This document shows, in pieces, positions 10,556 to 60,897 of a stretch of 64,000 nucleotides of DNA. The stretch's first letter is position 1, and each line of letters begins with the position of its first letter. The stretch is from NCBI GenBank assembly GCA_004431415.1, contig QPMI01000632.1, forward strand, positions 131,986 to 195,985, given 5' to 3'. The position numbers and the translations under genes are program-made. Origin of the DNA: Cyanophora paradoxa CCMP329. Lineage: Eukaryota > Plantae > Glaucophyta. The notes below the pieces were generated by a model that saw only the letters and a program-made list of their open reading frames with translations, was not told the DNA's origin and made no database searches.

Positions 10556-13500
10556 ATGGACGATATCTTCAGCATCTTTCTTAGCAGTAGGAGAAAGCGC
10601 GCCCGAGACGAAGAGCCCCCGCCAGCGCAGCCGCGGCCTGCGCAGGCCCCTCGCGCTCCAGAGCAGCCGGCCGCATCGCGCATCGTCGAGCAAGAACAGG
10701 AGCCCGCGGCAAAGCGCTCGATCGGCGACTACCTCGCAGCGCGCAGAAGTTCGAGCGCCCCGACGCCGATCGCATCGTGCGCCGCGCCCGCGCTCTTTCT
10801 TCCTGCGCGTACGCGCTTCTCTGAGTCAGCTTCTGCAGCGAGAATGCCGTCGTCGAGGCGGCGCTTGAAGCGACGTCCCCATTTAAGGCAGCTTCAGGGC
10901 GCACAGCTGCAGCTGCCCGTACCATGCATATGGCAACCTCCCTGGGATCAAATTCGCATTCTTCTGCTGAGGCGCGCGCCGGATCATGCTCGAGCACGAG
11001 CGCGCCCTCCCGCTGCAGCTCTCCTCGGCAGCCGCCCGGCCTCGCCAGCCCCGTTGCTGGCTCGCAGCCCGCCCCGGGCGCCGGCGCGAGCTCGAATATC
11101 CAGCGGGCCCTCGCGATCGCCGGCCCCGAGCGCGCCCTGAGCGCCGAGCGGCGCCGCGCCGCGGCCGCAGACGTGCTGCGAGAAGTCCTCGCGCCGCGGG
11201 CACCCGGGCCGTTGCCCCTGCCGCTCTCCGAGCGCGCCGGCGCAGACGGCTCCCACCCCGCACCCGCGGCGGCGGGCAACAGCAGCGCGCCGAATTCGAA
11301 GCCGGCGAAGGAGAAGGGTGCAGTCAGCAGCGGCGGCGGCGGCTGGGCGAGTTCGAGGCCTCCGGATCCGCCGGAGGGCGCTGCGATTGCGAGCTGGAGC
11401 GACGACGACGACGAGGAGGAGGACGCGGAGGGGAGCGACGAGGCCCGCCCGCCCGCCCGCCCGCCGGCCGCCGCTCGCGCCCCCTGCGGCTGACGCTGCG
11501 CAGGGGCCGGATCCGGAGCGGGTGCTGGCGGAGATCGAGGAGGAGATTGAGGCGGAGATCGCGGCGGCCGGTTTGGGGGCGCCGGCCCCGCGGGGAGACG
11601 GCCGCTTCGGGTCCTGCGCGCGCCTCGGCACCGTGCGCGCCCCCTCCTCTGGAACCAAAACCCTTTCTGAACCAGGGCCCAGGCGCCGCCGCCGGCGGGG
11701 GCGCCGCGGGAGCCGCTGGAGCCGGGGCCCGGCCCTGGGGCCGGCCCGGCGGCCCCGTCCTCACCCGCCGCTCCGCGGGCCCCTCCCGCACGGGCCTTCT
11801 GAAGGCGGTGCCGCCGCCTCGGCGGCGGCGGTCGCTGACGAGCTGCTGGCGGGCGGGGCGGGGGCGCGGCCCACGCGGACGCGTACGCCCCGCGCGCCCC
11901 GCGACCGCTCCCCCGCCGAGGCCCGCCGCGCCCCTCTCTCGGAGCGGCCGCAGGCGGCGATCGCAGGCTCCGCGGCGGGCTCGGCCTCGGGCCCCGCCTC
12001 GCTCCCGCCGCTGCCCCTCGCTCCGAGCTCGAGCGCGGCGCCGGGGACGGGGACGGGGCCCGCGGCGGCGGCCAGGACGCCTCCCTCGGCGGAGCGCGGC
12101 GCTGCGCTCCTCGGGCGCATCGCCGCCGCCCTCGGGCAGCCCCTCCGCGAGGCACGCGCCCCGCCCGCCGCCCCGCCCCGCCCCGTCGCCCTCGTGGTGA
12201 TCGGCGTCCTTGCAGGTGGCGGCGGAGATGCGGGCGTGCGGCCCCGAGCGCCGCAGAGAGCTGCTGACCCTTGCCCGCTGCCCCTCGGGCCCCTCCGGCG
12301 CTCCCCAAGCGGCCGCGGGGCCGGGGCCGGCCCGGGCCGCGGCGGCCGCGGCCGCCGACAGCCCGATCGTGATCGACAGCGACGTGGAAGAGGGCGAAGA
12401 GATAGAAGGCGGGCGGGAGCCGAGCGGGCGCTGCCAAGGGGACAGAGAAGAAGAGCCGCGGCCGTGGGAGCCGGAGCCGGACGGGCTCGTCATGTTCCGC
12501 GTGCCGCCCGGCGGGGGCGCGGGGGACCCCGACGCGCGGGGCCGCTCCCTGGCGGACTTTCTCGCCCGCAACCGCCCCTCGCGCCTCACGCAGGCCTACG
12601 CCCACTGGATCTACGTGCGTGCGCCCCGCCTCGCGGCCGGTTCGCGTTTGGCCGAGGCCTGGCGGCAGGTGCATCGGATGGACGCGCGGAGGGGGGAGGG
12701 CGAGCCCGAGCTCCGCCTCAAGATCCAGATCGCAGAGGCCGAGTTCGAGGCCATGTGCGCCGCCGGGTGCGCGCGCGCTCGCGGCTCCCCCCGGATCCAG
12801 AGACTTCCCACGGAAGCGCGCCGGGGCGCGCCGGGGCGCGCCGGGGGGCGCAGGGCGGTGGCGGTGGAGGGGCTGAAGGGGCTGGCGGCCTTCTCGGGCC
12901 TCCGCACCGGCAAGTGGGTCATCTGGGCCCCCACCCGCTACGCGCGCCCCGCCCCCCGCCCATCCGCCCTCCCCCGCCCCGGGCGCGGGGCGCCCTGATA
13001 GCCGAGGCCGGCGGCCGGCGCTGGCGCCCTCGCAGATTGACGATAACTGGGAGAGGGTGGCGGGGGCGGTGGCCCGGGGCGAGCTCGGCCCGTCCGCCAA
13101 GGTCGCCCCGCGCCCCGCCGACGGCCAGACGCCGCGTGCGTCGGAGCCCAGGCCCCGCCCTGGGCCTCCCGCCGCCGGTTGCTGACCGCGCCCGGCCGGC
13201 CCGGCCCGGCCCTAGGGTACCACGCGCACGTGATTTGCGTCTACACGCCCGACCTCTTCGACGAGGCCGAGGTCCTCCGCGTCCGCGAGGCGCGCGCGCC
13301 CTGGCCCGCCGCCCCGCCCCGCCCCGCCCTGGCTTGCTTGCTTGACGGGGGCGCCCGGGGTGCCGGTCCGCCGCGTGTGTGTGCGCGCAGGCCCTCCGCG
13401 CCCTCGGCTTCCAGAGGAAGCTCGTGTACAAGGCGCGCCCCGCCCCTGGGCCTGCGCCTGGGCCTTAAGCTTTTGCACTCCCGCCTGCCACACAAATAGC

Positions 13501-13733
13501 CGACCCGATCCCTGCCCCAGCTGACGTCGACCGATCCCCTACTCCGTCTGCCACACACATAGCTGACCCGACCCCTGCCCCAGCCCCCTCCCTTATATTC
13601 TAAAACGCGTACCCCGCATCCGGATCCCCTTCCGTCAAATTTAACCTGTACCCCGCAGCCGGACCTGTACAACTACCTGGACATCGAGCGGGGCAACCGC
13701 TGGGGGATCCCCATGGCGATATACTCCCTCTAA
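10556..13733 (+). CDS. DUF1917/Bles03 (C11orf68/UPF0696-like, eIF4E-fold) protein with a long low-complexity N-terminus, copy A
   Basis: Spliced C-terminal domain FLARNRPS..HWIYV..TGKWVIW..IDDNWERVAGAVARGELGPSAKV..HVICVYTPDLFDEAEVLRVREALRALGFQRKLVYKPDLYNYLDI matches the family motifs as I recall them. Confidence 0.8.
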
Positions 13734-13979
13734 TTTTGAATCGGCCCAACTTCCCGCCCAATTGCAACCGGCAAGTCTCTAGCCCATAGCCTAGTAGTAC
13801 TACGGTAGCTAGAAGCTCTGCCAAAGGAACTCCCGTTTGTGGCTCGAGCTCTTCTTCTTGTCGTTTTTCGATTAGTGCTCTCAAGCTTGTCCTCCTTATT
13901 ATATATATACTTCGTATTTTACCGTCGGTGACATTGTACCACGTGCACCGTCGCAGCTCGTGCTTTCGAATCATTGAAT

Positions 13980-16900
13980 TCACTGGCCGTGTGCGCCTCC
14001 CGCGCGGCCCGGCGTCGGTGCCGGCCACGCCGCCCTCGCCGCCTCCCCAGCAGTGCCTAGAACGGCGGGGAGTCTGGCAGAGACGGCGCCCGTGCTGGCG
14101 CCTAGCGGAAACGTCGATGTCGAAAAGGGCTCAACGGGCGTCTCCTCGGGCTCTTCACCGCCGCCCATGAAGCCCCCGATGGCCTTCTTCAGACTTTTGC
14201 CTTTTGCCGCCGCATGTACAGCCGCCGCCGTCGAGGCGGCCCCCTCCACCAGCTCCCCGGCCGGTCCCATCACGTGCCTCGCCGCAACTGACGCGCCTGC
14301 TCGCACAACCTGCGCGCGCCTCTCAGTCAGTTACAAAATGACGGGGCCCCTTCACCGCGACGGCGGTACGGTCGCGCCTCGGAGGCCACCCGAGTGGAGG
14401 CGCCGCGGGGCGCGGGGCCGACTTTCTCCGCGTCGAAGGCTCGCAGCGCCTCCTCCATTGCTACGTGGATGGCCTGCACGAGTGTGATACACGGGCCGGG
14501 GGAACGGGGAGGGGGCGGGGGGAAGGGGGAAGAAGAGGGGGAAGAGGGGGGGAAGGGGGGGAGGGAAGGGAAGGGGGGGGAGGGGGAAGGGGACGCGGCC
14601 ACGCGCGTGCGCACCGCGGCGAGCGGATCGTCGCCGCTCTGGTGCAGCTGCAGATTTCCCTCCACCAGCATCACAGAGAAGGTCTGCCCCATCTCTGAGC
14701 GGCGGCGGATCCGGAGGGGCGCTCACGGTTCGATCGGCGGGTCGCGCGCGCCTGGTCGATCATCTGCAGCCGCCTGCGTGTTGACATGAGGGTTTTCAGT
14801 GCCCGCGGAGATCGACACAGAGGGCGGCGACGTCGACCTGAGGTACGCGTTGAAGACGACCTTGAGGCGCATCATGCTCCGCGAGGCCTGCTGCACCTGC
14901 TCCCGCGGCTTTGCCTGCCCGGTGCCGGTACCGGTGCCGCATCAGCGGAGCAAGCGCCAGCGCCGGGCGAGGGCGGCGGCTGCGCGCAATGAGGGTGCTG
15001 TAGATGATGGAGAGGACCCCGGCACCGCCCGTCGCCCCTGGCCCAAGGTTAGCGACGCCGCCGGCGCCTCGCGCGCGCGAGGGCACCGGCGCCAGCAAGG
15101 GAGGAGAGGTCGTCGCGGCGGGCGACGAGGAGGTAGAGAGCCGTCGGGATGAGCGCGAGGCCGAGAAGGAAGACGAGCACGTCCATCGCCAGGGAGATCA
15201 GGAGGCCCCAGCGCGCCTCGCCTGGCCATGGCATACGCCGGCTCGCGATCGCGGCAACCGGGGACAGGGCGCGAGGCGGGCCGGGGCGGTGCACGCACTG
15301 ACGTTGCGGTCGAAGGTCTGCTGAACCTGGTCACTGGCCGCCTGCATGAGCTTCTCGTAGCGGTTGGCATTGTTCTGGCGGGCCGCCAGTTTCCTGAACG
15401 CCGTCTCGCCGCCCGCCTCCATCATCAGCCGCCGCGCTGTGTCCTGCAGCGCCGCGCTCGCTGCGTCTATCTGCACGCCCCCCCCTGCGAAAGTGCCGGT
15501 CCATCCGACTCAGTGACTCGGGGCGGTTCGGGCCGCGAACGCAAAAGGACTTGCCGCTCGACATGATGTTCTCAAGCTCGACAATGATCATGTCCCGGAC
15601 CGGCGCGCTGAAAAACCGCAACGCGAGGCCGAAGTGGTCCGCCATAGTGGTCGCATTGCCCGACACGCTCACCGCCTGCGAGAAATCGCGACCGAATGTA
15701 TGCGAGGGGAGTACTAGTCTCGATCGATTGCGAGCTGCAGCTGCCGCAAGAACGGAAGCGTGCCTGGAAGTGGTCTTGAGCCTCGTGGACGATTCGCATG
15801 ACGGCGGAGGAGAGCTGCACTGGCTGCCAAGCGGGCGGGTGGGCGGGCCGGCGGGCAGGTGGAGTTCAAGATCTAAAGTGGAGCAGCATCGACAAAGGAA
15901 AAGGGGCGCACCACGCGGCCGTCGCGGCCGGGTTTGGTGAGGTGCTCGATGGCAAACACGGCCTGCCTCACGACGCTGTTGCTCAGATCTTTCAAGACCA
16001 GCTACGTATCGATATCCGTGGGACCGTGTACGCGTACGGTTGTGGGACCGCGCAAATGCATATGACAAGTCAGATCCGGAATTCGAATGTTTTGACATTA
16101 AACGTTGTTTTGGTGGCGGGTGGACGGGAGTGACCTCAATACTGTCCCCGCACCGCAACACGCCGAGTAGCTTGAGGCACAGTCTGTACATGTGACCGCA
16201 ATATTTAATTATAACGACGTGGATTTCGCGATTCGCCATTGGCGATTGCACGGCCTGGGGCGGGGCGGGCGCACGCATGGATGTCGTAGAACTTTGGCAC
16301 GACGCGGCACACGTCGACGATGCGGCTCACGGTGCGCTCGACCTGCCCGCGAGGGTGAGCGTCTTCTGGAGCCCGCTGCGCAGCTCGCGATCGCGATCGG
16401 GCAAGTGGAGAGCCAACCTCGCGCGTGAAAGACCAGAAGTCCTCCAGCGCGAACTCGTCGTTCTGACTCTCCCGCATCCCCTGCACCTGTGCACGCGAAG
16501 CCCCCCACGCGTGATCCCCCCGGTCGACGGGCCCGGGGGCCGGGGCCGCGGCGCGGGCAGCAGGAACCTTGAGCATAACCCGGAGAGCGTCATATGTGTG
16601 CTCGCCGATCACCGGCCGCTTCAGAATGCGCAGCACTTGGCTGCGGCGCCGGCCCCGGCTTGCAAACATGTACAGAGAGATCTAGACGCAGCGGTCGTGC
16701 TTTGTCGGCCCCGGCGGGTGCGTACTTTGTGATGATGGAAGCGACGGGGACGGTGCGGAGGGCGCGCAAGGCTGCCCACTCGCGCTTTTGCGCCGCCTGC
16801 TTCTCGGGTGTGAAGTCATCTGCGCGGCCTTCGCTGGCGAAGCACGGACTTCGTAACTGCACGCGCTAAAGGCAGAGCGCACTCGGATCGGGTTGGTCGG

Positions 16901-18283
16901 GGTTCGACGGGGCGACCCAGCCCTCAAGGGCGTCGTGCAGGGCGGCGAGGTGCTCCGCCCTCTCAGCTACGCTGCCATCGCGCGCGCTCACCAGCACCCT
17001 GCGAGTCCGTCGCCGGCGGCGGGCCATCGAAGTGTCGAAGGGGGACGCACGCGTGGGCGAAGAAGGAGAGAAGGGGGTCGGGGTCCTCGACGGCGCGGCG
17101 GGAGAACTCGAGCAGGAGGGACGCGGCGGGGCGGCGTGCGCCGTCCGCGCCAGGTAGAGACCCTCCAGCACGTAGTGCCTGCCGCGCCGCGAAGAAAGGG
17201 GAATTCGAAGGCGGCGGGACGGGCTCATCATGAAGGCGAGGCCGGGGGGGGGACCGAGAAGGGGCGGGGGGAGGGGGGAAGATCTAGAGATGGAGAGAGA
17301 GAGGCTGACCATAATCATGAAGAGGAGGGGAGTGGGAAGGGGGCCGGGAGGGGGGCACGCCGACGGGGGGGAGGCACGCCGACGGACGGGGGGGGGGGGG
17401 GGGGGGATGAAACTTGGAAGGTACGGAAGGTCTACAGCGAGCCTACAGCTTTCTATATAGGGGGAAGGCCGGACGAAGGGAGGAAGGCCTACGGCGCTAG
17501 GGGAAAAGGGCCGGGGCAGCATATATATATATACCTGCAGAGACCATCCGACTCCATGCTGGGGTCAAGATGTTGCAACATTACCTGCGACGGCCGCGGG
17601 GCCGCTGTGAGCCTTAAGCTTGCAGCGGCCGTCGCTGATTCCGCGCAGCAGATCTAGAGCGCGATTCGGCGCACCCGCTTCGCCCCCGGGTCGGTTTCAC
17701 CGCCGATGCACGCGAGCACAGCAAGGACGTTGACGAGCCAGCGCCGCGCATGTCGATCCGACTGCTGCTGCATCTGCGCATGCGGCCTCTCTGCTGCTGC
17801 TGCTGCTGGTGCCTCGCTTGCAATTGCAATCGCTTCTGCAGCAGCTGCTGCGCGCCATTTGGTGAGCGCCATCTTCTGGGCCGCTTCCTCCGCTCGGGAC
17901 TTGGTTGCTGCAGCTGCCGCCCTCTCGCGCAGCTCTTTCTCCTGCATTTTGTGCTCGAGAACCTCACATATCATCGACCGAAGGTCCCTCCAATCCTGCG
18001 GGAGGTCGCCTGCGGAATTCGAAGCTTAAGCTTAGCTATATATAGGCCGGAGGATGGGCGCTGGCCGCGCTGCGGCCGCGCGCGGCGCGGCGGCCGGCCG
18101 CGGCGCGCGACCGTCGGACGGTCCGCCGACGCGGCAGCTGAAATGCACCTGTTGGGGCGCTGCGCGACGACGCCTCGAGAGCTGACAGGTGCACCGCCAT
18201 CCGCTGGCTGTGTGTGCCCTTCGCCAAGGTCTGCAAACGCACCTTTGCCACAGCGCTACCGCGCAGTCCTCCAAGCTGGCCAT
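13980..18283 (-). CDS. Hypothetical large multi-exon protein with coiled-coil and a transmembrane segment (may be more than one gene)
   Basis: Chain of protein-like exons: MICEVLEHKMQEKELRER, VQGMRESQNDEFALEDFWSF, MADHFGLALRFFSAPVRDMIIVEL, TM-like WGLLISLAMDVLVFLLGLALIPTALYLLV. No family recognised. Confidence 0.45.
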
Positions 18284-18757
18284 GGCCGACAGCTGTTCCC
18301 GCGCCTGCAGCTGCTCTAAAGCCAGATCGATCCATCCAACCTGCAGCTATGTACTACGGTATACGTATGTGCACGTGTGGGCCGATGTCTAGATCTGCTC
18401 CCTTCGCGCGATCGCGATCGATCAAGCAGCTCAGCAGCTGACCGGCGAGGCTAGAGCCTGAGGCTGCAGGCTAGCGCTGCGCATGCAGCTCAGCGGCTGC
18501 CAGCCTGGCAGCTGCAGCCTGCAGGCTGCAGCTGCTTGAAGCTTCGATCGCGCATGCATATGCAAACATGCCAGCTGCAGGCTGCTTGGGGTACAGGTAC
18601 TTCGGCGTCGACTCTATTCCGCACGTGCACGTGTTCCGGATCCGGTCCGGGTCCGACTGGACTCAGCTAGCGCTTCTGCAGCCTGGCAGGCTGCAGCGCG
18701 ACTCATGCATGATCAGCTTCTGCAGCTTATAATTAATTATATATGCTTCGAATTCTT

Positions 18758-21700
18758 CCTCGCAGCGCGCAGACTCTCTGAGAAGTTCGAGCGCCCCAAC
18801 GCCGATCGCATCGTGCGCCGCGCCCGCGCGCTTTCTTCCTGTGCGTACGCGCTTCTCTGAGTCAACGTCAGCTTCTGCAGCGCGAATGGCGTCGACGAGG
18901 CGGCGCTTGGAGCGACGTCCCCATTCGAAGCAGCTGCAGGTCTCGGGGGCGCCGGCGCAGCTGCGCATGCACTTGCACCCTCGAGCTCCATGGGATCGAG
19001 TTCGAATTTTTCTGCGGAGGCGCGCGCTGGATCATACTGGAGCACGAGCGCGCCCTCCAGCTCTCCTCAGCAGCCGCCCGGCCTCGCCAGCCCCGTGGCT
19101 GGCTCGCAGCCTGCCTCGGGCGCCGGCGCGTCGAGCTGCAGTCCGGCCAGCGCGAGCGCGAGCGCGAGCTCGACGATCCATGGCCAGCGGGCCCTCGCGA
19201 TCGCCGGCCCTGAGCGCGCCCTGAGCGCCGAGCGACGCCGCGCCGCGGCTGCAGACGTGCTGCGCGAAGTCCTCGCGCCGCGGGCACCCGGGCCGTTGCC
19301 CCTGCAGCTGCCGCTCTCCGAGCGCGCCGGCGCCGACGGCGCCCACCCCGCACCCGCCGCGGCGGACGACAGCAGCGCGCCGAATTCGAAGCCGGCGAAG
19401 GAGAAGGGCGCAGTCAGCGGCGGCGGCGACGGCTGGGCGGGTTCGAGAGACGGCACCGCAGACGCTCTGTCGCGGCCTCCGGATCCGCTGGAGGGCGCCG
19501 CGATCGTGAGCTCGAGCGACGGCGAGGAGGACGCGGAGGGGAGCGACGAGGCCCGCCCGCCCGCCGGCCGCCACTCGCGCCCCCTGTGGCTGACGCCGCG
19601 CAGGGACCGGATCCGGAGCGGGTGCTGGCGGAGATCGAGGAGGAGATCGCGGCGGCCGCGCAGGCCGGCTCTGGGGCGCCGGCCCCTTCGGGAGACGACT
19701 GCCTCGGGTCCTGCCCGCGCCTCGAGCTCGGCGCCGTGCGCCCCTTCCTCTGGACCCAAGACCCCTCTCTGAACAGGGGCGCAGGCGCCGCCGCCGGCGA
19801 GGGCGCCGCGCGAGCAGCTGGAGCCGGGGCCGGGCCCCGGAGGCGGCACGGCGGTCCCCGTCCTCGCCCCCTGTTCAGCGGGCTCCGCCCCGCCCGGGCC
19901 CTCGGCCACGGCAGCCGCTGACGAGCTGCTGGCGAGCGGGGGCGCCGCGGCCCATGGCCACGCGCACGCCCCGCGCGCCCTCGCCGACCCCTCCCCGCCC
20001 GAGGCCCGCCCCGCCGCCCCTCCCTCGAGCGATCGCTTGAGCCTTACCGGAACGGCCGCAGGCGGCAATCGCAGGCTTCGCGGAGGGCCCGAGCGCCGCC
20101 CCGCTCCCGCCGCTGCCCCTCGCTTCGAGCGCGGCGGCGCCGGGGACGGGACCCGCGGCGGCGGCCAGGACGCCTCCCTCGGCAGAGCGCGGCGCTGTGC
20201 TCCTCGGGCGCATCGCCGCCGTCCTCGGGCAGCCCCTCCGCGAGGCCCGCACCCCGCCCGCCGCCCCGCCCCGCCCCGCCCGCCCTCGTGGTGATCGGCG
20301 TCCTCGCAGGTGGCGGCGGAGATGCGGGCGTGCGGGCCCGAGCGCCGCAGAGGCTGCTGACCCTTGCCCGCTGCCCCTCGGGCCCCTCCGGCGCTCCCCA
20401 AGCGGCCGCGGGGCCGGGGCCGGCCCGGACCGCGGCGCCCGCGGGCGCCGACAGCCCGATCGTGATCGACAGCGACGTGGAAGAGGGCGAAGAGATAGAA
20501 GGCGGGCGGGAGCCGAGCGGGCGCTGCCAAGGGGACAGAGAAGAAGAGCCGAGGCCGTGGGAGCCGGAGCCGGACGGGCTCGTCATGTTCCGGGTGCCGC
20601 CCGGCGGGGGCGCGGGGGACCCCGACGCGCGGGACCGCTCCCTGGCGGACTTTCTCGCCCGCAACCGCCCCTCGCGCCTCACGCAGGCCTACGCCCACTG
20701 GATCTACGTGCGTGCGCCCCGCCTCGCGGCCGGTTCGCGTTTGGCCAAGGCTGGGCGGCAGGTGCATCGGATGGACGCACGGGCGGCGGAGGGCGAGCCC
20801 GAGCTCCGCCTCAAGATCCAGATCGCAGAGGCCGAGTTCGAGGCCATGTGCGCCGCCGGGTGCGCCGGGTGCGTTCGAGGCTCCCCCCGGATCCAGAGAC
20901 TTCCCACGGAAGCGCGCCGGGGCGCGCCGGGGCGCGCCGGGGCGCGCAGGGCGGTGGCGGTGGAGGGGCTGAAGGCGCTGCAGCTGGCGGCTTTCTCGGG
21001 CCTCCGCACCGGCAAGTGGGTCATCTGGGCCCCCACCCGCTACGCGCGCCCCACCCTCCCCCGCCCCGGGGTGCGCGCCCTGATAGCCGAGGCCGGCGGG
21101 CGGCGCTGGCGCGCTCGCAGATTGACGATAACTGGGAGAGGGTGGCGGGGGCGGTGGCCCGGGGCGAGCTTGGCCCGTCTGCCAAGGTCGCCCCGCGCCC
21201 CGCCGACGTCGACGGCCAGACGCTGCGTGCGTCGGGGCCCAGGCCCCGCTCTAGACCTCCCGCCGGCCACGGGCCGGCCAGCCGGCGGTTGCTGACCGCG
21301 CGCGCGCCGCCCGGCCCTAGGGTATCACGCACACGTGATGTGCGTCTACACGCCCGACCTCTTCGACCAGGCCGAGGTCGTTCGCGTCCGCGAGGCCCGC
21401 CCTGCCCAGCCGCCCCGCCCCGCCCCGCCCTGGCTTGCTTGCTTGACGGGGGCGCCCGGGGTGCCGGTCCGCCGCGCGTCTGTGTGTGTGCAGGCCCTCC
21501 GCGCCCTCGGCTTCCAGAGGAAGCTCGTGTACAAGGCGCGCCCCGCCCCTGCAGCTGGGCCTGGGCCTGGGCCCCCTGCACTGCTCCGTCTCCACCACAA
21601 ATAGCTGACCCGACCCCTGCCCCATGGCCAGCCCCCTCCCTTATATTCTAAAACGCGTACCCCGCATCCGGATCCCCTTCCGTCAAATTTAACCCGTACC

Positions 21701-21781
21701 ACGCAGCCGGACCTGTACAACTACCTGGACATCGAGCGGGGCAACCGCTGGGGGATCCCCATGGCGATATATTCCCTCTAA
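18758..21781 (+). CDS. DUF1917/Bles03-like protein, copy B (recent duplicate of copy A lacking its first about 175 bp; possible start at 18990)
   Basis: Colinear with 10732-13741 including introns; C-terminal domain intact to GIPMAIYSL-TAA (21779-81); homology starts abruptly at about 18758. Confidence 0.7.
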
Positions 21782-21805
21782 TTTCGAATATTAATGCTTG
21801 TCTTC

Positions 21806-21990
21806 TGTTTTTGGTGAATTACCGGCCACAGTTTCTGACACCAGCTGGCAGCCGCTAAGCACTGCGGGAGCTGCCCAGGCCCCAGGGGGCACAGAGACAA
21901 CATGTACAGCTGCAGAATCAAAATAACTAAGACAAGAGTACGAAGCTTAAGAACGACAAGACGAAGCTTAATTATATAAGAGCCAATTGC
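21806..21990 (+). repeat. Dispersed repeat family A, copy 1 (probable non-autonomous transposon relic)
   Basis: Begins TGTTTTTGGTGAATTACCGGCCACAG and aligns for about 190 bp with 23028-23234. Confidence 0.65.
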
Positions 21991-22653
21991 AAAACCGACA
22001 ATTAAAAAAGAAAGACTCAGATGTAGAGACGATCTACCGTCACGGCGTATTACTATATAGCTACTAGAGACTACTAGTACCGGTACTACTACGGATCTAG
22101 ACTTCATGATCAGAGACAGCCAGCTGCAGCTGGCAGATCTAGAAGAGTGTTCGAGAGACGGGTACGGCCGCCGGCTTTCGCGATCGACAAGGAAACGGGA
22201 GAAAATACTAGGTCTTCGACTCGCCCCCGCCCCGGGCCCCCTGCTCGTTTCAGGATGTCCAAGGTGGGGTCTAAATAAACAGAGACGGCAGTTGCAGGCT
22301 GCAGCTAGCGCTCGCTAGGCGGCGTAGGCCTGGGCCCGAGGCCGCTCGAAATTGAAGTGGAATAAAAAGCCCTCTCGCATCGCTGTCGGAGCCTGTCGCC
22401 CGCCGAGTCTACGCCCCGCCCGGCCCGGCGAACCGCGCAGCCACCCGCCGCGCCTCCGGACCCGCCGGCGCGCCCCGCCCGTCGAGCCGCGGCGCCGCCG
22501 GCCGGCCGCGCCTCATGATCAGCCCCGCCCGGCGTCTGCATCTGCATAGCGCATAGCGCCGGCGCTATCGCTAGATCTAGATCTAGATCCAGTTCGCATC
22601 CCGCGCGCTACGCAAGCTGCAACCGCGCGCCTCGCTGGCATGGTCTAGCGCGC

Positions 22654-22750
22654 GGCATATATACCGGCGGGCGACGGCGCGCGACCGCGGGCGATGGCGC
22701 GCGCGGGGGCATATATATATACCGGCGGGCGACGGCGCGCGGCCGCGGGC
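22654..22750 (+). repeat. Tandem duplication of an about 40-50 bp unit
   Basis: GGCATAT(AT)nACCGGCGGGCGACGGCGCGCGRCCGCGGGC at 22654 and 22708. Confidence 0.75.
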
Positions 22751-23027
22751 TGCGCGCTTGCCGGCTGCTGGCATGAGCGCAAGCCGGCTGGGCTACAGCA
22801 AAACAACCCGACGGAAAAAAGACTGGAAAAAAGCACAGTGTTGATTCACTGTTGAATCGACAGCGATGGGGGTCGAATCGGTGCAGACGAAAGTGCTTCA
22901 AAACGGATTTGGTACTGGTTCAGAGGGTTGTTTTTATCGTGTGAAACACTCTTGAACCCAGTACGGTGGCAGTACCCTGATATCGATAGGAAATTAGGAA
23001 TCCGGATCCGGATCCGGCGCTGCAGGC

Positions 23028-23234
23028 TTTGTTTTTTGGTGAATTACCGGCCAGTTGGCGGCCACAGCCTCTAGACACCAGCAGTACTAGACTACTAGTG
23101 GTCCAGACCGTGATCGGACCGTCCAGCACTGCGGGGGCTGCCCAGGGGGCATATGCATATACAACAAAGAGGACGACTGAAATAAGAAAACTAAGGCAAA
23201 AGCACTAAAAGCAAGAAGACAAAGAGCCAAATGC
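23028..23234 (+). repeat. Dispersed repeat family A, copy 2
   Basis: Same GGTGAATTACCGGCCA head and shared AGCACTGCGGG.GCTGCCCAGG..GAGCCAA body as copy 1. Confidence 0.65.
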
Positions 23235-24103
23235 CGCTTTGAAATGCGCCGCAGCCGCGCTGGCCATGGCCCCGGGGGCCGGGGCCCGCGCATGCGCATG
23301 ATGATGCCATGATGATGCGCGCATGCGCCGGCGCGCTGCGCCGCATCATGGCCCGCATGCGCAGGCCCGCAGGCTCCGCAGGCTCCGCAGCCTGCGCGTA
23401 CTACGGTACATGCATGCGGGCCGTGATGCGGCCCGACGTCGACGATGCGGGCCGCGGGCCGCGGCGCCGGCGGCGGGCCGCCGCCACTGAGCGCAGCATA
23501 TATGTGACATGCCACATTGTCGACGGACGTCACCGCCTGCAGCTGCAGGCTGCAGCAGCCTGAGGCACGAGCCGCACGACGTGCACGGTGAGGCATCTGC
23601 TTCATCGTGAGCTGCTTCTTCAAGGTAATCGCTATCGATATCCTTTCTCCGTCGGCGCCCGGCCTAGGCCTGCCGCAGTGCATGCGCAGCTGCAGCCGCT
23701 GTCCCCGCGGATATTGCATGAACGCGTTCGCGCGGGCGTGCCTCTAGATACTGCAGCTGGAGGCTGGAGCGGCGGCGGCCGCGGTCTTGGCCTAGCCCAC
23801 TGCAGCTGTGCACTGCCGCAGTGCGGCACGTGACACGTACGGTACAGCTCGCAGTCGCATCTCCGACTCGCATGGACAGGAAAGAAGCACAGATCTAGAA
23901 GCATATATATACAGCTGCAGCGATGGCCGGACGTCGACGCGGCCGCGGGGCGGGCCCGTGGACAGCTGCATGCGCAGTGCACGTGGACGTCGCGGGAAAT
24001 ATCCTGCAGCTGCAGCTGCGCATGCTGCGCATGCATATGCGGGTTTACTAAGCTTAAGTTAGGTTTGGCTGAGGAGCCCGAGTGTTCAAATCAATTGCTA
24101 TCG

Positions 24104-27100
24104 ATGGACGAGGATCCCACGCGCACGATACTCGTTGTCGGCCTGGACGACGACGTCGACCGGTCGCCCCTCACGATCATGGCGCACGCCGAAAGTGACG
24201 ATCAGCCGCCGCCTCCGGCGCCGCCCGCGGCCCTGGCCGCCGCAGCTGCAGCTGCAGGCCCTGCGATGGCCGCCGCGTGCGCCGCGTTCTGCCCTCGGTG
24301 CGCATGCGCCGCGTTCTCGCGCATGTTTGTCCTGCCCTAGGCCTCCAGTGACATCGGCGGTGCACTTGCGTGGCCGGGCGGCGCAGGCTGGTGCTCTCGC
24401 ACTGCCGGGGCGCGCGGCTGCGGGGGACGTGCCACGCGGTGGCGGCGCTGCTCGACCTGGCCGGCTTCAGCGACCTCGTGCAGCGGGCCGGCGCCGGCGA
24501 GAGCGACATGGAGCAGGTCTTCGACGCCATCAACAGCTGCTTCCGCGCCGAGATCGACCTCCTCGAAGGCCCGCCCGCCCCGCCCGGCCCCGCCCTGGCC
24601 CCCCGCCCCCCCCCCCCCCCCCCGCCCCTCCCCCCCCCCTCCCCCCCCGCCCTTGCCCTCGCGCGGGCCTCACCCCCCGCAGAGTACGGCGCCGATGTCC
24701 TCTCCTTCCTCGGGGACGGCCTCCTCGGTCCGTTCCGGGCTGCCCCGCCGCGCCCCGGGCCCGCGCCACCCCACCCCCCACCCAGCAAGCCATAAGCCAT
24801 CCCGACCGCAGCGATCTGGCCCGTCGAGCCGTACGAGGCTGGATCCGGGGCTGGGGCGGAGAGGCTGCCCTGCGTCGCGGAGGAGGAGCTGGAAGGGGAC
24901 AGCGACGACGAGGAGGGGCGGCTCGCGTCGGCCCTCGCCCTGCGCGCCGCCGCCGCCGCCGAGTGTGCCCTGCGGGTGCGCCGTTCGACCTTTTTCGCAC
25001 GCGCGCGTTCGCCAGTTCTGCGAGCGCGGACGCAGGTGCAGGAGCGCTTCGCGGCGGGTGTGGCCGGGGGCATGAGGCTGCGGGTCGCCCTCGCCGCGGG
25101 GCCCCTGCGGCTCCACGTCGGCGGCATCGGCGGCCCGGCGCCCCCGGACGGCCGCCCCGCCTCGCTCCTCCGCATCTCCGAGAGCCACGGCCAGTTGCAA
25201 GAAGGACCCCCTCAGGCCGGCCTCCGGAACCCGGACGGCTCGCCCGTGCCCGGGTGCGCCCGCCGCGCAGCTGCTGCCGCGGCTTAGCCTGCTCCGAGAC
25301 TGAGCGTCGGCGGCGGGGCCAGGCGGATGGTGTTCTTCGTGAAGGGCGCGGCGGTGACCGAGGCCGGTGACGCCCTCGCCGACATCGCCCCGGGGTCCGC
25401 CCCGCCGGCCCTCCGACCCGACCCGGTCCTGGCTTCAATTTACGCCGCTGATGTTTACCGGGCCCGGCAGGCAAGTGTGCCTCTGCCCGTCGCTGCTGGA
25501 GCACATCCCGCGGTCGGCGCTGGTCGTCCCCACCCGCAGCATGCGGCGTGAGGCGTCCCGGCGGGAGGTCCTGCAGCGGGAGGCGGCGGGCAAGTCCGCC
25601 CGGCGCCTCTCGGGGCACCCGACGGCCCTGCTCGCCGGCGCCAGCTCCGCCTCCTTCAGCATGTCTCTCAGCGGCCCCGGGGCTGAGGCGCTGGGCGCGA
25701 CGACGCTGACGGGCAGCCGCAGCGCGCGGCTCGGGTCGCGATCGAAATCGACCGCCGACCTGCAGCTGCCGACTGCGACCGCCTCCGGATCCTCCCGCGC
25801 GCTGCCCCTTGTCGTCGACCCGTCGGCGGGGACGCCCCTCGCCGACTACTGCCGCACCGTCCTTGGCGTCCCCTCCGGTCCGCCTCGCCTGCGATTAAAA
25901 TATTGCCCGCTCCGCGTCGTAGCCCCTCGGCCTCTGCGCGCTGCTGAAGGGCAGCAGGGAGCCTGGCGGGGCGGCTGCGGGAGCCGGCGCCGCCGCTGGA
26001 GACCCCCGAGCAACTCGCCCTCGCCTCCCTCTTCGTCCCTTACACTGCGTGCCCCGGCCCCTGCTCAACATTGAGCACTGCAGCCGGCGGCACGGCTGAC
26101 AGCGGCCGCCCGGCGCGCCGCGCCGTATGCGCAGGTGCGGGCACGGCTGGACCAGATCGCCGGCCTCGGCGCCGTCGACCCCGCCCGCTACCTCGCCGAG
26201 TTCCGCCCCGTGCGCTCCGCCCGCCGCCGCCGCTGCCCGGCCCGCCCCGCCCGCCCCGCGAAATGCGAGCTCGAAGGTCTCCGTCCTCTTCGGCTCGCTG
26301 GAGCTGCGGGGCGAGGGCGACGAGGCGGCCGAGGGCGCCGGCCCGCGCGCCGTCCAGCGGGCGGTGCGGACGGTGCAGGCGCTGCTCTACGCCCACGAGG
26401 GCTCCCTCCGCCAGATCGTCCTCGACGGTCCGCGCGCCCGCCCGGCCCGCCCCGCCCCGCCAGCGGCGCCGCCCCCGACGCTGAGCGCTTTCCCGCTTAG
26501 ACAAGGGGCTGGTCGTGATCGGGGTCTTTGGCTTGTACCCCATCTCCCACGAGGGTGCGCCGATTCCAGCTGCAAAATCTCTCTTTCGCGCCCCCGAATT
26601 TTGCCCTTGAGCTTCCAATGCAACTCGTGATTGCTGGATTGGAGGGATCTCACTCACCTCTTCCTCCCTTCCCCAGACGACACGGGGCGGTGCGCGGCGT
26701 GCGCGCTGGACGTGCGGGAGGCGATGGAGGCGGCCGGCGTCGGCTGCGCCCTCGGCCTCGCCACCGGCCCCGCCTTCTGCGCCTTCGTCGGCGACCCCGC
26801 CACCCGCTGGTGACCCCGCCCCGCCCCGCCGGCGTTCTGTCTTTCTGGAAGCCGGCGCCGCAGCGAGTTCTCGGTCTTCGGGAACGCGGTGAACCGGGCG
26901 GCGCGGCTGATGGGCAAGGCCGGCCTCTCCGGCGCCGGCATCCTCGCCGACGGCGAGACGCGCGCTGCCGCGTGCGCCCCGCGCCGCCCCTCCGGTCCCC
27001 GTCTGCTCGCGCGGCGGCCGACGCCTCCGGGCGGCGCAGAGACCTGCAGGTCGAGATGGAGGCGGCGGGGGAGTTCAACCTGAAGGGCATCCCGGGGCCC

Positions 27101-32749: not shown

Positions 32750-34830
32750 CGCTCGAATAAAGAAAAGCCTCAATGAAAGGCCAGATTCAGCGTACACTAT
32801 ATGAAAGATGGTCCAACCGGCGACGATGGCGGTGACTGCAATGACAAGTGGCTATCATAGTATGGAATGAATACAAAAATCGAGAGGATCGGATGCCAAA
32901 GCAAACCTGAATGCCAATTTCGCATGATGGGACTAGTACTGCCTCTGTGTCTGCAGGCTGAGTATGCACGTCAATGCAGGCTGGCGAGTCTTCGAAATCA
33001 ACGAGGGGTACCACCAGAAAGTACAAATTCAGAAAGCTGAGACAACTGAGGCGGCATCCGCGGACGAACTGGGGCGAAACAGCGCGGGACTGAAGCGAGG
33101 CCAGCAGGGCGCCGTGCCCAGCAAGCGTGCTGGGCTGCTGGCCGGGTGGCAGGCGGCAAGGGCGCAGGCACGCGGCGCAACGCGGGGCGTACGCGGGGCG
33201 CCAATCGCGACTGAGCAGACAAGCGGCACGTCGTGCGCAGCACGCAATTGGATTGGCCGCGCTCCGCGCGCACGCAGCACGAGTGCCGGGCAGCGTGCTC
33301 GGCTGCGGGCAGCGGCGCGCGCCTCCGGTTCTGCGGTGCAAGCTCGATGCAGTGGAGCGTAGTCCAGGCGGCACGCGTACCGTACGGCGTATGCGGCGCA
33401 GTGCGAGGTTAAGCGGAAATTTAGAGGAGACAGCTAGCCTAGTAGGGAGAAGTGGTTGCCATGTAACACCGCCGCGTGACGCAGCTGCAGCCCAGCGCCG
33501 CGCGAGGGAGAGCCCAGATCTACAGGAATGAGAGAAAAGTTGGTTTTCCCCTCGAAAACCACTTTTCGCGAGTTCGAGAAAGCTCTCGCGAGCTCGAGTT
33601 TGACGCTCGAAAGTCGAAGGCTGACCGGTCCACCGAGCCAATCGGAACGCGAATAAGCCTCATTTTTGTTGCATACTGGACCTCGCAAACGGCCTCATAG
33701 AAAATTTTTGGGAAGCAAGCTGGGAGACTCTGAGAAGCCCTTCGGTCTTCGGCCCCCCTTGCAATATAGGGCATGTAAGTTGATGTAACTCCGCAATGAG
33801 TCCGCATGTTGTTAAGTGTGTAGAATGCAACGTTTTAATTAATGTTAATTATTATATAACAGAGTTGAACAGTCAGAACAGACCTCTAAAACAATCATAT
33901 GCATGGAATGTTGATTGGTCGGAAGGGCACGTCACGGCGTAACGCAGTCTTACGTAGACCATATGGATTGATACAGTGTGTGTCCGTCACTGTCCGATGA
34001 CTCCGATGATGTCCGATCAATCGCAAAGTCGACGCAAACCATGGCCAAGACACCAAAAACAATGATGGTCCGAAATTGGGTACACTAACCCTGGAGATTC
34101 CGAGAAATCGGCGAGAATCCGAGAACTCGGCAACTTCGACAAAAAATGAAAAACAAATTGCCGAGAACTCGAGTTCCAGTTCTTTTTTCCTAATTCGTGT
34201 TTTGTTTTTCGGTGAAAACCGGTCACTTACCGGCCACATGCACTGTGTCACTGTCACTGTCACAGTCTGTGTGACTGTGATGCACAGACTCTGCAGGTCC
34301 AGCAGTCTCTCCGACTAGCGGCTAGGGCTGGGTCCAGTGAGATCAGTGGAGGGTCGAGGGTCTCACTCCACTCACTGAGTACTAGTGAGGATTTCGGCTC
34401 ACTCGTACAAAGAAAAATGTATGAGGCCAGTGAGCAGGACCTCCGCCAGCACCGTGTGTCACGGTGTGTGTGGGTATCTGGCGCCAAAAAAATCACGACC
34501 CAGGCGCCCCACGGCCCCCACCTAACGATTTGGGGGGTAAAAACTGCTGTATCTACAGTATCTACGGTATAATCTACCCCCAAACGTTAACCGCGGCCAA
34601 AAGGCGTCGAAACGCATTAATTCGGTGCCGCATTAATAGCCATAGTTTTTGTTTTTGGTGAATTACCGGCCACAGGCCCACAGCCTCTAGTCTACTCCAG
34701 CACTGTGGGACCAGTGTGGGTAGGGGTCCGGGGCTCCGGCCCCCGGGCCCAAAAACGCATTAATATCTGCATGGCGGTACTACGGTAGAGTCTAGAGTCT
34801 AGCCTACCGGGTATACGTAGTACCGGTAGA
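32750..34830. mobile_element. Low-GC block of decayed, nested transposon-like sequence
   Basis: GC drops to about 50 percent, no gene-like exon chain; short direct and inverted repeats (AACGATTTGGGGGGTA at about 34524 versus TACCCCCAAACGTT at about 34575); repeat family A copies; dense footprint motifs. Confidence 0.4.
34646..34706 (+). repeat. Dispersed repeat family A, copy 3 (partial; weaker copy at about 34200-34238)
   Basis: TTTTTGTTTTTGGTGAATTACCGGCCACAGGCCCACAGCCTCTAG..CCAGCACTG. Confidence 0.65.
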
Positions 34831-34832
34831 TA

Positions 34833-35094
34833 CCGTAGAACACATAAATACCGCGCCCACTTAATTACCGCGGTACCAAATTACCGCGCCGAGAATTTGT
34901 TAAAACGCGGTAATTTGGTCCCGCGGTAATTTGCTGCTGAGAAGTCGCTCCATACAGTACCCCCCATAATTACCGCCCCATACAAGCCTCAAATTTGTAA
35001 AAACGCGGTAATTTGGTGCCGCGGTATTTTGCTCTATGGCGGGCCGGGTTTTAAAACGCGGTAATTTATGCCGCGGTAATTTAGTGCCCGACGG
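34833..35094. mobile_element. MITE of Tc1/mariner (pogo-like) type, 262 bp
   Basis: TA on both sides (34831-32, 35095-96). Imperfect TIRs: left CCGTAGAACACATAAATACCGCG, right reverse complement CCGTCGGGCACTAAATTACCGCG. About 10 internal AAWTACCGC(G) motifs in both orientations; no ORF. Confidence 0.65.
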
Positions 35095-35468
35095 TAGTAG
35101 ATACAAGCAGTGTGGTCACACTGTGGTCCAGCAGACTGGCAGTGGACCAGCACTGCGCCGTGACACCAGCAGCGCTAGGCTCCGCTAGCCTGCGCGCGCG
35201 TGCACTGGTACTGCGGCAGCTGCAGCCTGCCGCTGCGCATGCAGCCCGGCCGCTGACTCTGAGCTACCGGTAGAATCTACGTATACCATAGTACGTATAC
35301 GGCAGCCGCGCGTACTACGGTAGGCACAGACATCGCCGAGTCGAGATGCAATTCTATACAAGCGCACCCAGTTGCAGCAACACAGCAATTGAAGCGCGCA
35401 CGCGCATGCATACGCACACCTCGAAGCAGCTGCTCGCAACGGCCGCCTGCAGCCGCACGCGTACGCAT

Positions 35469-42765: not shown

Positions 42766-43040
42766 GGGTCGAGTCAAACAGCGAGCGCAAGCCCGAGCGC
42801 GTACCCCGACTGCTTCCGAATTTCCGGCTTTGCAGCCAAATTTCCGGAAATTCCGGCCGGCGGGCGGCGGCGGCCCGCCACTCGAGCTCTAGAACTGATC
42901 CCCAAATTCCCGGCTGCCCCCTTCAGACAGCCTGGCAGGCGCCTGACCGAATTCATCATTTGTACATTCGGTAATAGGACCTGCCGGTCCGCGACAGGTG
43001 GCAAACGGCGCCCGGCCCGCGCGGGCCCGGCCCCGGGTCC

Positions 43041-46000
43041 TCAGTCGTCGTCGGCGGCGGAGACGGCGAGGGAGGAGACGACGAGGCCCTCGGCGAGCGC
43101 CGAGGCGGCCGCGCGCTCCTCGGGCGGCAGCGCCCCGCCCTCCAGCAGCGCCCGCAGCGCCCGCTCCGCCCCGCCGCGCACAGCGCCTCCGCCGCCCCGT
43201 CCGACGCCGACGCGAGCGAGCGCAGCAGCGCCACCGCCGCGGCGCAGAAGCGGCGGTCCGCGCGCCCCGCCGGCGCCTCGAGCTGCCGCACCAGCGCCGC
43301 CGGGCCCCCCGCCTTCAGGAACCCCTCCACCAGGGCCCGCCTGGGCACCGCCCCGTCCAAGCCCGCCCCGCCCTCCGCCTCCGGCCCGCCGGCGCTGAGC
43401 CGCCGCGGGTGGCTGTGGCTCGGCAGCGACGGCGAGTCCGGCAGGTGCCTGCGAGCCCGGTCGTTCCAGAAGACGACGAAGAGAGCCATAAAAGGGCGCA
43501 CGAGTGGTCGGACATGGCCTCCGGGATGCCGAGGAGGCGCCCGAAGAAGCGGGTGATGGCGCCCCCGTCGCACGAGGCGCACGGCGGGGGGCCCAGCGGC
43601 AGCGGCGTTCCCGCCGCCCGGTCCGGCAGCGGCGAGGGCGAGGGCGCGCGGGTGTCGCCGGGGGTCGGCGAGGGCGGGAGGAGGGTCAGGGAGGACCGCA
43701 CGCTCAGCGGCGCCGCCGACTGCGTGAGCAGCGAGTTGAGCAGCTGCGCGCCGGGGCACCGTGAGCTCTCGGCAGGGAGGGTACTGGAGCGTACGCCGCC
43801 GCAGAACCGAACTCGAACCTGGATGCCGTACGAGGAGATGCGGGGCGGCCGATGCTTGATCAGCGACACGATCGGCCTGCGGGGGTACGCCGCTCGCGGG
43901 CGAGCGGGCTTGCGAGAGGGGTGCGGGGAGCACACCGCGTGACGTTCGCCGCGGCGGCCTCGACCAGGAGCCGCTCGCGGGTCAGCGAGTGCGCCGCGAT
44001 GTGCTGCGGGGTACGGCGATCAGGAAGGGGGGGGCACGCCCGGTGGGGGAGGGGGGGTACGCCGTGCCTGTAGGACGGCGATGGAGTTGCACGCGACGGG
44101 ATCGTCGCCGCTCGCGAGGAGGCCCGCGAAGACCCGCACCTGCGAGGAGACGCGGGTTCGAATCCCGGCGGGATCATTTCGCGGTTCCCCCTGGGCTCGC
44201 CCCGCACCATCTGGAGGTCCGAGGATGCGAGGAGCTGCGGGGAGCGAAGGCGTCGGCTGCGGCGCGGCGGGGGTACGCATCGAGAGAGGCGGCCGCACGT
44301 GCTCGGAGGTCTGGGGGTTCAGCGTGATGTAGAACATGGCTGCGGCGAAAGGAAGGGAGTCGGGCGGGGTCGGGCGGGGCGAGGGGAAGGGGCGGGCGCG
44401 CCTGCGCCGGCAACGTCGCGGGCGGCCCGGTCCTGGGAGAGCAGCATGCGCGCCACCAGCTGCGCGCACGAGGCGCCGCTGGACGCCTGCCGGCACCTCA
44501 GCTGGGGTACGCGGCCTCCGAGGAGGGGGTACGCGTGCATCACGGAGGAGGACGTGGTTCTCGGGCAGCTCCGCGAGGTACCCCGTCAGCTTCGCCGCCA
44601 GCTGCGGGGGGTGTTGACGGGGGTACCGGGTCGGCCGGCGGGGTACGGGGCTACCAGCTGCTCGCGGCCCTGGCCGTCGCGGAGCGTGGTGGAGAGGAGG
44701 GGTACGGCGCCAGCGGCGGCGATGGCGCGCTGGTTGGGCCCGTTCCGCCTCGCCAGGCTGCAGGGGTACGTCGGGCGGGCCCCGGAAGGGACGGCGGGGG
44801 GTACGAGGAAGGTAAGGGGGGGGGGGGGGCACCTGGAGAGGGCGAAGAGGGCGCACTCGCGTGCGGCGGAGGGCCGGCGGCGGCGGCGGCGGCGTCCTCC
44901 GCCTCGCCGGCCGGGGCCGGGCCGGGGCCGGGCGGGCTCGCCGGCCGCCGCTGCCTGGGCCGTGCCCTCCAGCATCCTCACCAGCGGCGGGATGCCCCCG
45001 ATCATCGATATGCTCGTCTGCGCGCGCGGGGCGTCGGCCCGAGGGGCCGGGAGGGGGGTACGCGATTGCTCGGACCTGGAACATGGGGTCCGCCTGCGCG
45101 AGGGCCCCGAGCGTCTTCGCGGCCTGCGCCTGCGAGGAAAGGCTCGACAGGGGTACGGGGATCGCGGAGGAGGGGTACGGGTGCCTGCTGGTCGGTCGAT
45201 TCAAGGCTCTCGACGATTGCCCCGATGGAAATCGAGTCCCGCAATTGCTCTGGAACGGGGAGAATGAAGCGTCGGATAGGGGTACGCACAGATATTGAGG
45301 TTGCGAGGGTACGGGGTACCGAGGCTGTCTGTGGCGGCGAGGCGCTCGATCTTGCGGAAGCTGTTGTTGCGCTCATGGGCGCTGGCGCGCCGTCAGCGGC
45401 GACCGGGGGGTACAGTGCGACGGCGGGATGGGGGGAGGGGTACCCGGCGACGATCTCGCCGCTGGGGGGCGCGGGGGCGCGCTCGGGGGTCGGGGGCCCC
45501 TCGATAGGCGGGGAGGGCGTGGCGGGCCGCCCGGCGGCGGCCGAGGGGCTGAAGCCGCGGAAATGGGAGGCGGCGAGGGCGCGGCACGTCCCGCCGAAGC
45601 CGCCGGCGAAGGCGGCGAGCGCCGCCTCGCGCCGCACTTGCGAGTCGTCCCCAGCGTGGGCCCCCAGCTGCCCGGGGCTCAGTGAGACGGAGGCGCGGGG
45701 CCGGGCCGGGCGGGGCGGCGGCACCAGGGCGCGGATTGTGTGCAGCTCGTCCTCCGTCAGCTTCAGCGGCTCGGCAACGACCTGCGCGGGCGGCGGGCCG
45801 TGAGATGAGCGCCGCGGGGCGGCGGGGCCCGGTGACGCGCGCCCTGCGGAAGGCCTCGGAGAACGTCCGCCACGAGACGGCGTGTACGTCGTCGAAGCTG
45901 TCGCGCCAAAAGTCCGAAACGCTCGGCACCTGAGGCTCGCAACTCGACACAGAGGAAAAAGCCCAAGTCACGCCAAAAAGCCCACTTTCATGGCGAGCCG

Positions 46001-46084
46001 GTCTACGGCGGCCGGCGTGCTCGGTGCCGCGCCGGAAGGGGGCGCGTCCACCTGGACCACAGGCTGGGCGGTCGGGCCTGTCAT
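43041..46084 (-). CDS. Armadillo-repeat protein with an N-terminal Cbl-EF-hand-like segment
   Basis: ARM repeats AAKTLGALA, IGGIPPLVRML, NQRAIAAAGAVPLL, FLKAGGPAALV. Exon 1 MTGPTAQ..RLAMK joins in phase 0 (intron 45930-45985) to VPSVSDFWRDSF. Ends SAADDD-TGA. Confidence 0.65.
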
Positions 46085-46298
46085 CGTGAAGACTGCTGCG
46101 CTAAGGCTAGTGACGCAGACTCCGAGCCTCGATCGAACGCAGCACGTACGCTCAGCGCGGCTGGAACTTCGGGACCTGACCAAGCTACGGCCGATCGAAA
46201 CAGTATAGTTTGCTTTCGGGTGAAGGTGAAGGCTGGCCTGCCAATCGAGCCACACTTAGGCTTTTTCCTCTGTGCCGAGTGGCGAACTTCAAGGTGCC
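45925..46298. repeat. Inverted repeat, arms 45925-45968 and 46254-46298, flanking the ARM gene start exon
   Basis: 44/45-nt arms with 5 mismatches and 1 gap: GGCACCT-GAGGCTCGCAACTCGACACAGAGGAAAAAGCCCAAGT versus GGCACCTTGAAGTTCGCCACTCGGCACAGAGGAAAAAGCCTAAGT. Confidence 0.85.
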
Positions 46299-46513
46299 AG
46301 CAGCCAGCTCGGGCTCGCCTAACCCGTACGATCTGGCACGGCCCGCTCGCGCGCTGGATGCACGGAAAAGGTCACTGACTCACCGATAACGCCAGCCGGG
46401 CTTCAATCCAAGAAAGTCGCGTACCCCAAGCGAGAGATCAAATTGCAGAAGGAGCGGCCGCAGATGTCGAGTTAGCGGGGCGTAGAGCGCGGAGCGGAGC
46501 ACTATAGGAGACG

Positions 46514-50872: not shown

Positions 50873-50968
50873 CCCCGCCTCCGGGAAAGCATCGCGGTCG
50901 AGTGGGAGAGCTATCAATGTAAAGAGTCCTAACAACAACAGCCAGCGTCGCCCGCCGGCGCTAGCGAT

Positions 50969-51621: not shown

Positions 51622-51852
51622 CGCGCACGAACTGCGCGGGCCGGGGACCAATGTTAGGGCTCAGCCCGCAACAGGCGACTGCAGAGAGCGTGCCGGGCAG
51701 CACAAAAGTGCTCGGGAGGACGAATTCGCGGACCTGCTCGAATGGGGTACACGAGCGATTGGGGGGTAGGCACAACACGAATCGTGCGTCGAGCGCCTCG
51801 AAGCCTTGTCTCCAGCTAACCCTGGGCCCATTCAACCCGGTTCCCCGCGCAG

Positions 51853-60795: not shown

Positions 60796-60897
60796 CGCCC
60801 GCCAGGGCGGGAGTGTACGATTCGTGTGAATAAGAAATCCAACAACTACCTCAACGCTAAAAACCGCGCAAGGTTACAGCTGCAGCGTGCAGCATTT

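Follow-up and report, generated by a model that had tools for sequence, protein, structure and literature searches.

Six-base palindromic scars in Cyanophora paradoxa DNA as probable footprints of transposon excision

Two copies of a DUF1917/Bles03 gene, lying in a 64,000-nucleotide window of contig QPMI01000632.1 from the alga Cyanophora paradoxa CCMP329 (all positions below are coordinates of this window), differ at several places by insertions that obey one rule: a triplet X in one copy stands in the other as X-rc(X)-X, rc(X) being the reverse complement, so that six bases have been added (+6). A sister class, X-C-rc(X)-G-X, adds eight (+8). The locus raises the question of what process makes the same short palindrome at different triplets. 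The palindromic scars are confirmed as real and far beyond chance, and they are read here, with a probability of about 0.7, as excision footprints of cut-and-paste transposons that have 3-bp target-site duplications (TSDs) and leave hairpins on the flanking DNA.

Scars between the two DUF1917 genes

Copy A (10729-13741) and copy B (18755-21789), both on the plus strand and represented by the EukProt C. paradoxa gene models tig00021462_g21594 and g21596, form a direct duplication, 83% alike when gaps are counted. The Bles03/DUF1917 domain was identified for the pair. An Rfam search gave no match. Their global alignment of 2843 columns holds 185 substitutions and 47 gaps, of which 6 nucleotides is the most frequent length (13 gaps), and most of these six-base gaps follow the rule: nine exactly and two (18861 and 11010) with one mismatch, where a random six-base insertion would fit with a probability of 0.009 and a six-base tandem duplication with one of 0.12. 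An earlier note, made from the sequence, had named nine such indels, and each was found exact, letter for letter; eight are among the nine exact gaps, the other exact gap (18980) being new, and the ninth named event, at 19952, is masked by adjacent gaps in the global alignment and clear on direct comparison. In these 10 exact events both copies of a fixed three-base X flank the insert, and between them stands rc(X), which repeats the flank as a palindrome, as a footprint would have it. Counting exact, decayed and probable scars, the pair holds 10-15, or about one per 12-18 substitutions.

Most scars sit in copy B. The exact ones are on CTC at 18980-18988 (short form in A near 10940), CCA at 19178-19186 (11100), CTG at 19302-19310 (11218), CTC at 19721-19729 at the end of an exon (11624), CCA at 19952-19960 (11871), CTG at 20978-20986 (12882), GAC at 21205-21213 (13120), CTG at 21549-21557 (13446) and CCA at 21622-21630 (13580). 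To these are added a decayed +6 scar on GTC at 18861-18869 (short form near 10825), whose single mismatch fits CpG decay, and a probable +8 scar on AGA (AGA-C-TCT-G-AGA) at 18771-18783, read from the sequence of a 10-nucleotide gap that also includes an extra CT slip (short form 10745). In copy A the long forms are a decayed scar on CAG at 11010-11018, with one mismatch (short form near 19058), GAG at 12025-12033 (20127), GAC at 13523-13531 in an intronic tandem unit, and a probable scar on CTT at 13464-13472 in an intron. The last had been offered as a tenth event and keeps that qualified standing, since its short form matches B weakly, differing at 3 of 9 bases. The claim that both copies are affected holds as well, although lopsidedly: 8 of the 9 named events are long in B, and overall the long form lies in B for eleven scars and in A for three or four, a sample too small for significance. 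Exons and introns are affected alike, as had been stated; the scars at 20978 and 21205 each add two residues in RNA-supported DUF1917 coding exons, the former ahead of the GKW motif, and those at 21549 and 21622 are intronic.

The scars are genomic rather than assembly errors, because independent short-read contigs hold both copies. Contigs from two public short-read DNA runs match B without differences at 18800-19295 and 19618-20181, and copy A is present in the same runs as contigs of its own at a depth similar to that of B; together the contigs cover three of the first-named scar sites and the newly found one at 18980. Two probable RNA runs gave spliced contigs with A alleles. No B alleles were seen among the RNA contigs listed, which does not prove B silent.

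Other differences separate the copies. The low-complexity N-terminal part holds non-triplet indels between B and A, and B alone carries larger insertions of 36, 27, 22 and 19 nucleotides (19126-19161, 19447-19473, 20026-20047 and 21262-21280), for which neither scar class accounts; that at 20026 is nearly palindromic. The edges of RNA contigs suggest donors other than GT, GC among them, in several DUF1917 introns, such as those after 12941 and 21043.

Excess and distribution of the motif along the window

Counting the motif across the window, a check that the earlier note had proposed, gave 408 occurrences of U-rc(U)-U with a three-base unit U, against 72, 82 and 141 expected under Markov models of order 2, 4 and 5, whereas units of 2, 4 and 5 bases showed little or no excess (1 observed against 0.6-1.7 for the five-base unit). 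With GC-only triplets set aside, positions 1-42800 hold 263 against 8-15 expected, and in the same set one-mismatch forms exceed expectation by a similar number, so that the process has been long-running. The +6 motifs use 31 of the 32 triplet classes, of which a few GC-only classes may be chance. Reconstructed empty sites favour C at -1 and G at +1 (z 4.5, isolated sites), and fold-back microhomology at empty sites showed no excess (0.29 against 0.29).

The +8 class bears on mechanism. X-C-rc(X)-G-X was counted 32 times where 0.8 were expected, C/G is the sole enriched pair among the 16 possible spacer pairs, and the densities of +6 and +8 forms track each other along the window (rho 0.76). 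The C and G were not copied from the flanks, because the flanking base is C at just 23-25 of about 60 half-sites (about 40%); they would therefore derive from something with C...G ends that once lay between two copies of X. On the same count, a reading of the +8 class as a 5-bp hAT-offset footprint at C-NNN-G was rejected. TACGGTA/TACCGTA, present 10 times where about 2 were expected, was also considered as a class of mariner-type footprints and was dropped, five of the ten being +8 scars on GTA. Weaker excesses were seen in related forms: X-rc(X)-G-X occurs 21 times against 4.5 but its reverse-complement form 5 times against 4, a strand asymmetry that is unexplained, and the 4-bp offset class (124 against 54-72) and +4 forms (155-172 against about 115) are raised, some of them being overlapping stacked scars.

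The direction of change is insertion in three cases where sister copies could be consulted. At 21622 both tandem units in the intron of A are short, placing the insertion in B; at 13523 three sister tandem units are short and one is long; and contigs that stem from other genomic copies of a high-copy repeat read CTA-TAG-CTA where the window copies have CTA, the long form being the minority. The polarity assumed in the earlier note is to that extent supported. The protein outgroup gave no direction, the solved Bles03 structure being intermediate between A and B at 20978; exon-by-exon sequence searches for relatives matched only the two Cyanophora gene models, and no strain polymorphism was found among the matches listed for the two DNA runs, which are seemingly of one genotype. 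Copies of a high-copy repeat lie at 21800-22000, 23026-23240, 34195-34260 and 34648-34720; its contig depth sums to as much as about 15000, where single-copy DNA has about 55. The repeat terminates, on the minus strand, in an A-rich tail, one copy begins exactly at the end of paralogue B, and it is possibly a SINE-like (short interspersed element) or other retro-type element.

Distribution along the window is strongly uneven. Density is about 0.2 per kb in conserved genes, their introns and spacers included (43000-60800), against 2-20 per kb elsewhere. The control block of 43000-60800, which encodes FAM91, RPS3, a pyridine-nucleotide oxidoreductase and condensin Cnd2, holds 7 scars against about 3.4 expected and none of the +8 class. 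Several spacers reach 14-20 per kb. The spacer at 18300-18760 consists in large part of stacked scars, iterative collapse of long to short forms removing 17 (+6) and 4 (+8), or 29% of its bases where the null gives 1.6%; a second saturated spacer, at 23000-24100, loses 30 (+6) and 6 (+8), or 21% of bases against 0.9%. Collapse slightly bettered the alignment of two repeat copies but did not improve that of A and B, because shared and chance motifs collapse too. The meiotic gene MND1 (Pfam PF03962; 38900-40500, plus strand) is also scar-rich at 11 per kb, with 18 scars against 0.7 expected, almost all of them intronic; no sexual cycle is known to have been described for this alga. A six-base insertion in an intron should be close to neutral, and the clean introns of the conserved genes therefore speak for harm at an occupied stage or for targeting of chromatin, and not for a uniform polymerase error.

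GGGTAC/GTACCC abounds in the introns of the 43000-60800 block, its orientation following the strand of the gene: the 4-kb bins at 44-52 kb hold 18 and 20, and those at 12-44 kb hold 0-2. It is perhaps an intron or chromatin signal. In a second paralogue pair, at 61579-63647, the coding parts align without X-rc(X)-X indels and the introns are too diverged to compare. This pair is an inverted head-to-head duplicate of a gene of RING/TRAF-type zinc-finger character by its cysteine pattern, with exons about 94% alike and a short palindrome at its centre, near 62625-62650.

Excision footprints and rival explanations

That the insertions are hairpin-type excision footprints was first put forward in the earlier note, and it remains the best reading, favoured by the six-base excess, the specificity for a three-base unit and the polarity. 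The process would begin with an element that inserts at X, favouring C|X|G, to give X-[element]-X. By analogy with RAG and hAT chemistry, transposase would then nick at the element boundary and each flank would be sealed as a hairpin, after which a host nuclease would open the hairpins a few bases beyond the tip, leaving tails that are both pieces of rc(X), since each flank ends in X; any join that uses their overlap would give X-rc(X)-X, six bases longer and in frame. The original version of this mechanism, in which both hairpins open three bases from the tip, was too narrow. Enumeration of hairpin openings showed that 10 of 25 position pairs, including every overlapping pair, yield exactly X-rc(X)-X, and one product is able to dominate because all overlapping openings converge on it. 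Were the first nick placed one base inside an element that starts with C and ends with G, X-C-rc(X)-G-X would result, and in the enumeration the +8 form arises likewise. As elements moved on the scars would persist and tolerant DNA would fill with them, while genes that cannot bear an element in residence, or in which the chromatin escapes targeting, would stay clean even in their introns. The +6 and +8 excess, the C|X|G preference, the lack of fold-back microhomology and the avoidance of conserved genes support this reading. Nor does rate stand in the way: if each base undergoes 1e-10 to 1e-9 substitutions in a generation (our own assumption) and the genome is near 100 Mb, the ratio of scars to substitutions between the paralogues implies fewer than 0.01 excisions per genome per generation.

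A number of results weigh against the footprint reading. The search of the window for elements with terminal inverted repeats (TIRs), a 3-bp TSD and CAC-type ends returned only chance GC-rich pairs, and no transposase domain, including the TnpD/Transposase_21 DDE domain, was found in the 70 window open reading frames scanned; intron-rich genes can escape such a scan, and the maker need not reside in this window. No occupied/footprint pair was found in the window, nor among the matches listed for four runs in a local search over 18250-24200; the trio of occupied, empty and footprint alleles suggested earlier was likewise not found in the window. Partial forms of +5 show no excess. Published footprints are varied, with 28 types in 128 Ds excisions (PMC5873905), rice excisions are mostly deletions and filler (PMC4423477), and the Cyanophora genome paper describes little repeat expansion and leaves palindromes unmentioned (PMC6704402). 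In the literature searched, neither flank hairpins nor this footprint were found for any CACTA element. Finally, motif counts detect intact forms, deleted or non-matching excision products being invisible to them, and the uniformity of the footprint may be overstated. Two other element-like features were seen in the window: a 374-bp element at 45925-46298 with imperfect terminal inverted repeats of about 44 bp starting GGCACC, for which no target duplication was found, and, at 34831-35100, a small element resembling a miniature inverted-repeat transposable element (MITE), in which AAATTACCGCG recurs several times in direct and inverted orientation and whose ends are TA-CCGT-like.

Among the other explanations, an unlikely one, though ahead of the rest, is that a hairpin-forming nuclease with a three-base stagger, either a domesticated transposase or a transposase that attacks and then releases its target, makes the scars with no element ever resident. 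By the same unlikely account, the Cyanophora enzyme, domesticated or acting in trans, would be a chromatin-targeted mutator that writes in-frame six-base palindromes into DNA that is silent or dispensable, leaving conserved genes untouched. Such an enzyme would explain why the scars are uniform, why certain sites are preferred and why no elements were found close to scars, and domesticated hairpin-forming transposases are known (Kat1, RAG; PMC4763223). It would require duplication fill-in together with hairpin sealing without a donor, however, and element ends are the simplest source for the fixed, non-templated C and G in the +8 class; clean introns are also harder to explain without a harmful occupied stage, though chromatin targeting could suffice. 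Short-range template switching in replication or gap repair, in which X is copied, copied back on the other strand and replication resumes before X, formally gives X-rc(X)-X without an element and is documented in bacteria and apes, but the return point must precede the exit point, which is the sole class unobserved in human-chimpanzee data (PMC5453318). Micro template switching, as the earlier note had named this alternative, leaves the fixed length of 3 unaccounted for, has no pre-existing inverted microhomology to act on, predicts scars in all introns where those of conserved genes are clean, and does not supply the fixed C and G; it is largely refuted by the +8 class and appears improbable.

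Equally improbable is an unusual end joining of ordinary breaks, for example three-base staggered breaks in silent or methylated chromatin, through snap-back or end-to-end copying. Inserts made by end joining vary in length; folding back with a zero loop is sterically unlikely, the triplets used span all classes and not just the methylatable ones, and the fixed C and G are again unexplained. In its favour, scars cluster in spacers, in a meiotic gene and in the copy without alleles among the RNA contigs listed, and in Cyanophora methylation falls on repeats and on about a fifth of the genes (PMC12344493). The least credible account, to which very little weight is given, is that the short forms are deletions from ancestral palindromes or that the scars are sequencing or assembly artefacts. 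The ambiguity of the protein outgroup leaves it some room; yet a palindrome-removing process would deplete the motif, which is instead enriched 3-30 fold, the long form is the minority wherever three or more copies exist, independent short-read contigs carry the scars, and decayed copies show ageing in place.

The kind of event proposed is known; of a single stereotyped footprint as a leading class of mutation, as of this signature, the literature searched gave no account. If the footprint reading is true, the genome holds a single-base record of past transpositions, several per kb in tolerant DNA, and excision footprints are a leading mutation class that lengthens spacers and introns and adds pairs of residues to proteins. 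The scars would then also be in vivo evidence on how a 3-bp-TSD transposase cuts, the nick falling either at the boundary or one base within and the hairpin forming on the flank, a mode of cutting that was not found documented for CACTA-type enzymes in that literature. Scar density could serve as a natural insertion screen, in which clean introns flag genes intolerant of elements. As a practical matter, aligners and variant callers take X-rc(X)-X events for clustered errors.

Comparison with known systems

Of the processes compared, short-range template switching under the four-point model resembles the Cyanophora scars in producing short inverted copies of nearby sequence, but its lengths vary and the class needed is the unobserved one (PMC5453318). 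PIF/Harbinger elements and the Tourist MITEs (mPing) share the 3-bp TSD, and TSD-derived microhomology steers their repair to one outcome (PMC4561436); their targets are TAA/TTA and excision is precise and footprint-free, whereas the scars use nearly all triplets and a footprint is left. TAA/TTA is the densest triplet class and yet contributes just 6 of 307 isolated motifs, and PIF/Harbinger was rejected as the maker on this and on the footprints that remain.

For Ac/Ds, Hermes, Kat1 and RAG it is established that hairpins form on the flanks, that P nucleotides arise and that microhomology serves in joining (PMC5873905, PMC4763223, PMC2803484). The hAT members of this group (Ac/Ds, Hermes, Kat1) resemble the scars in their flank hairpins, palindromic P-nucleotide insertions and microhomology-guided joining (PMC5873905, PMC4763223). 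They differ in having 8-bp TSDs, palindromes centred on the complement of the element-adjacent base, deletions and many variants, where the Cyanophora scars have an even-centred palindrome on a 3-bp site, both site copies intact and one dominant product. A hAT element was therefore rejected as the maker: the unit is 3, the 7-8 bp offset classes number zero, and the 3-bp offset form (+4) is not enriched. In RAG1/2 coding joints and Transib, the nick falls at the exact boundary and P nucleotides are perfect. A boundary nick with perfect P nucleotides is the chemistry that would yield the +6 form; against this, RAG and Transib make 5-bp duplications (PMC2803484) and coding joints are deliberately varied. 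The five-base unit expected of a Transib/RAG TSD stands at chance (1 against 0.6-1.7), and this candidate too was rejected.

CACTA/EnSpm (CMC) elements have variable 3-bp TSDs and CACT(A/G) ends (PMC4423477, PMC3193017). The literature searched describes for them no single footprint that reaches genome-filling density, and the +8 class reveals only the first base of the element ends (C...G), not the full CACT(A/G). The variable 3-bp TSD and the C...G ends match the scar unit and the C and G of the +8 class, and it is plausible, on this comparison, that the maker of the scars belongs to CACTA/CMC.

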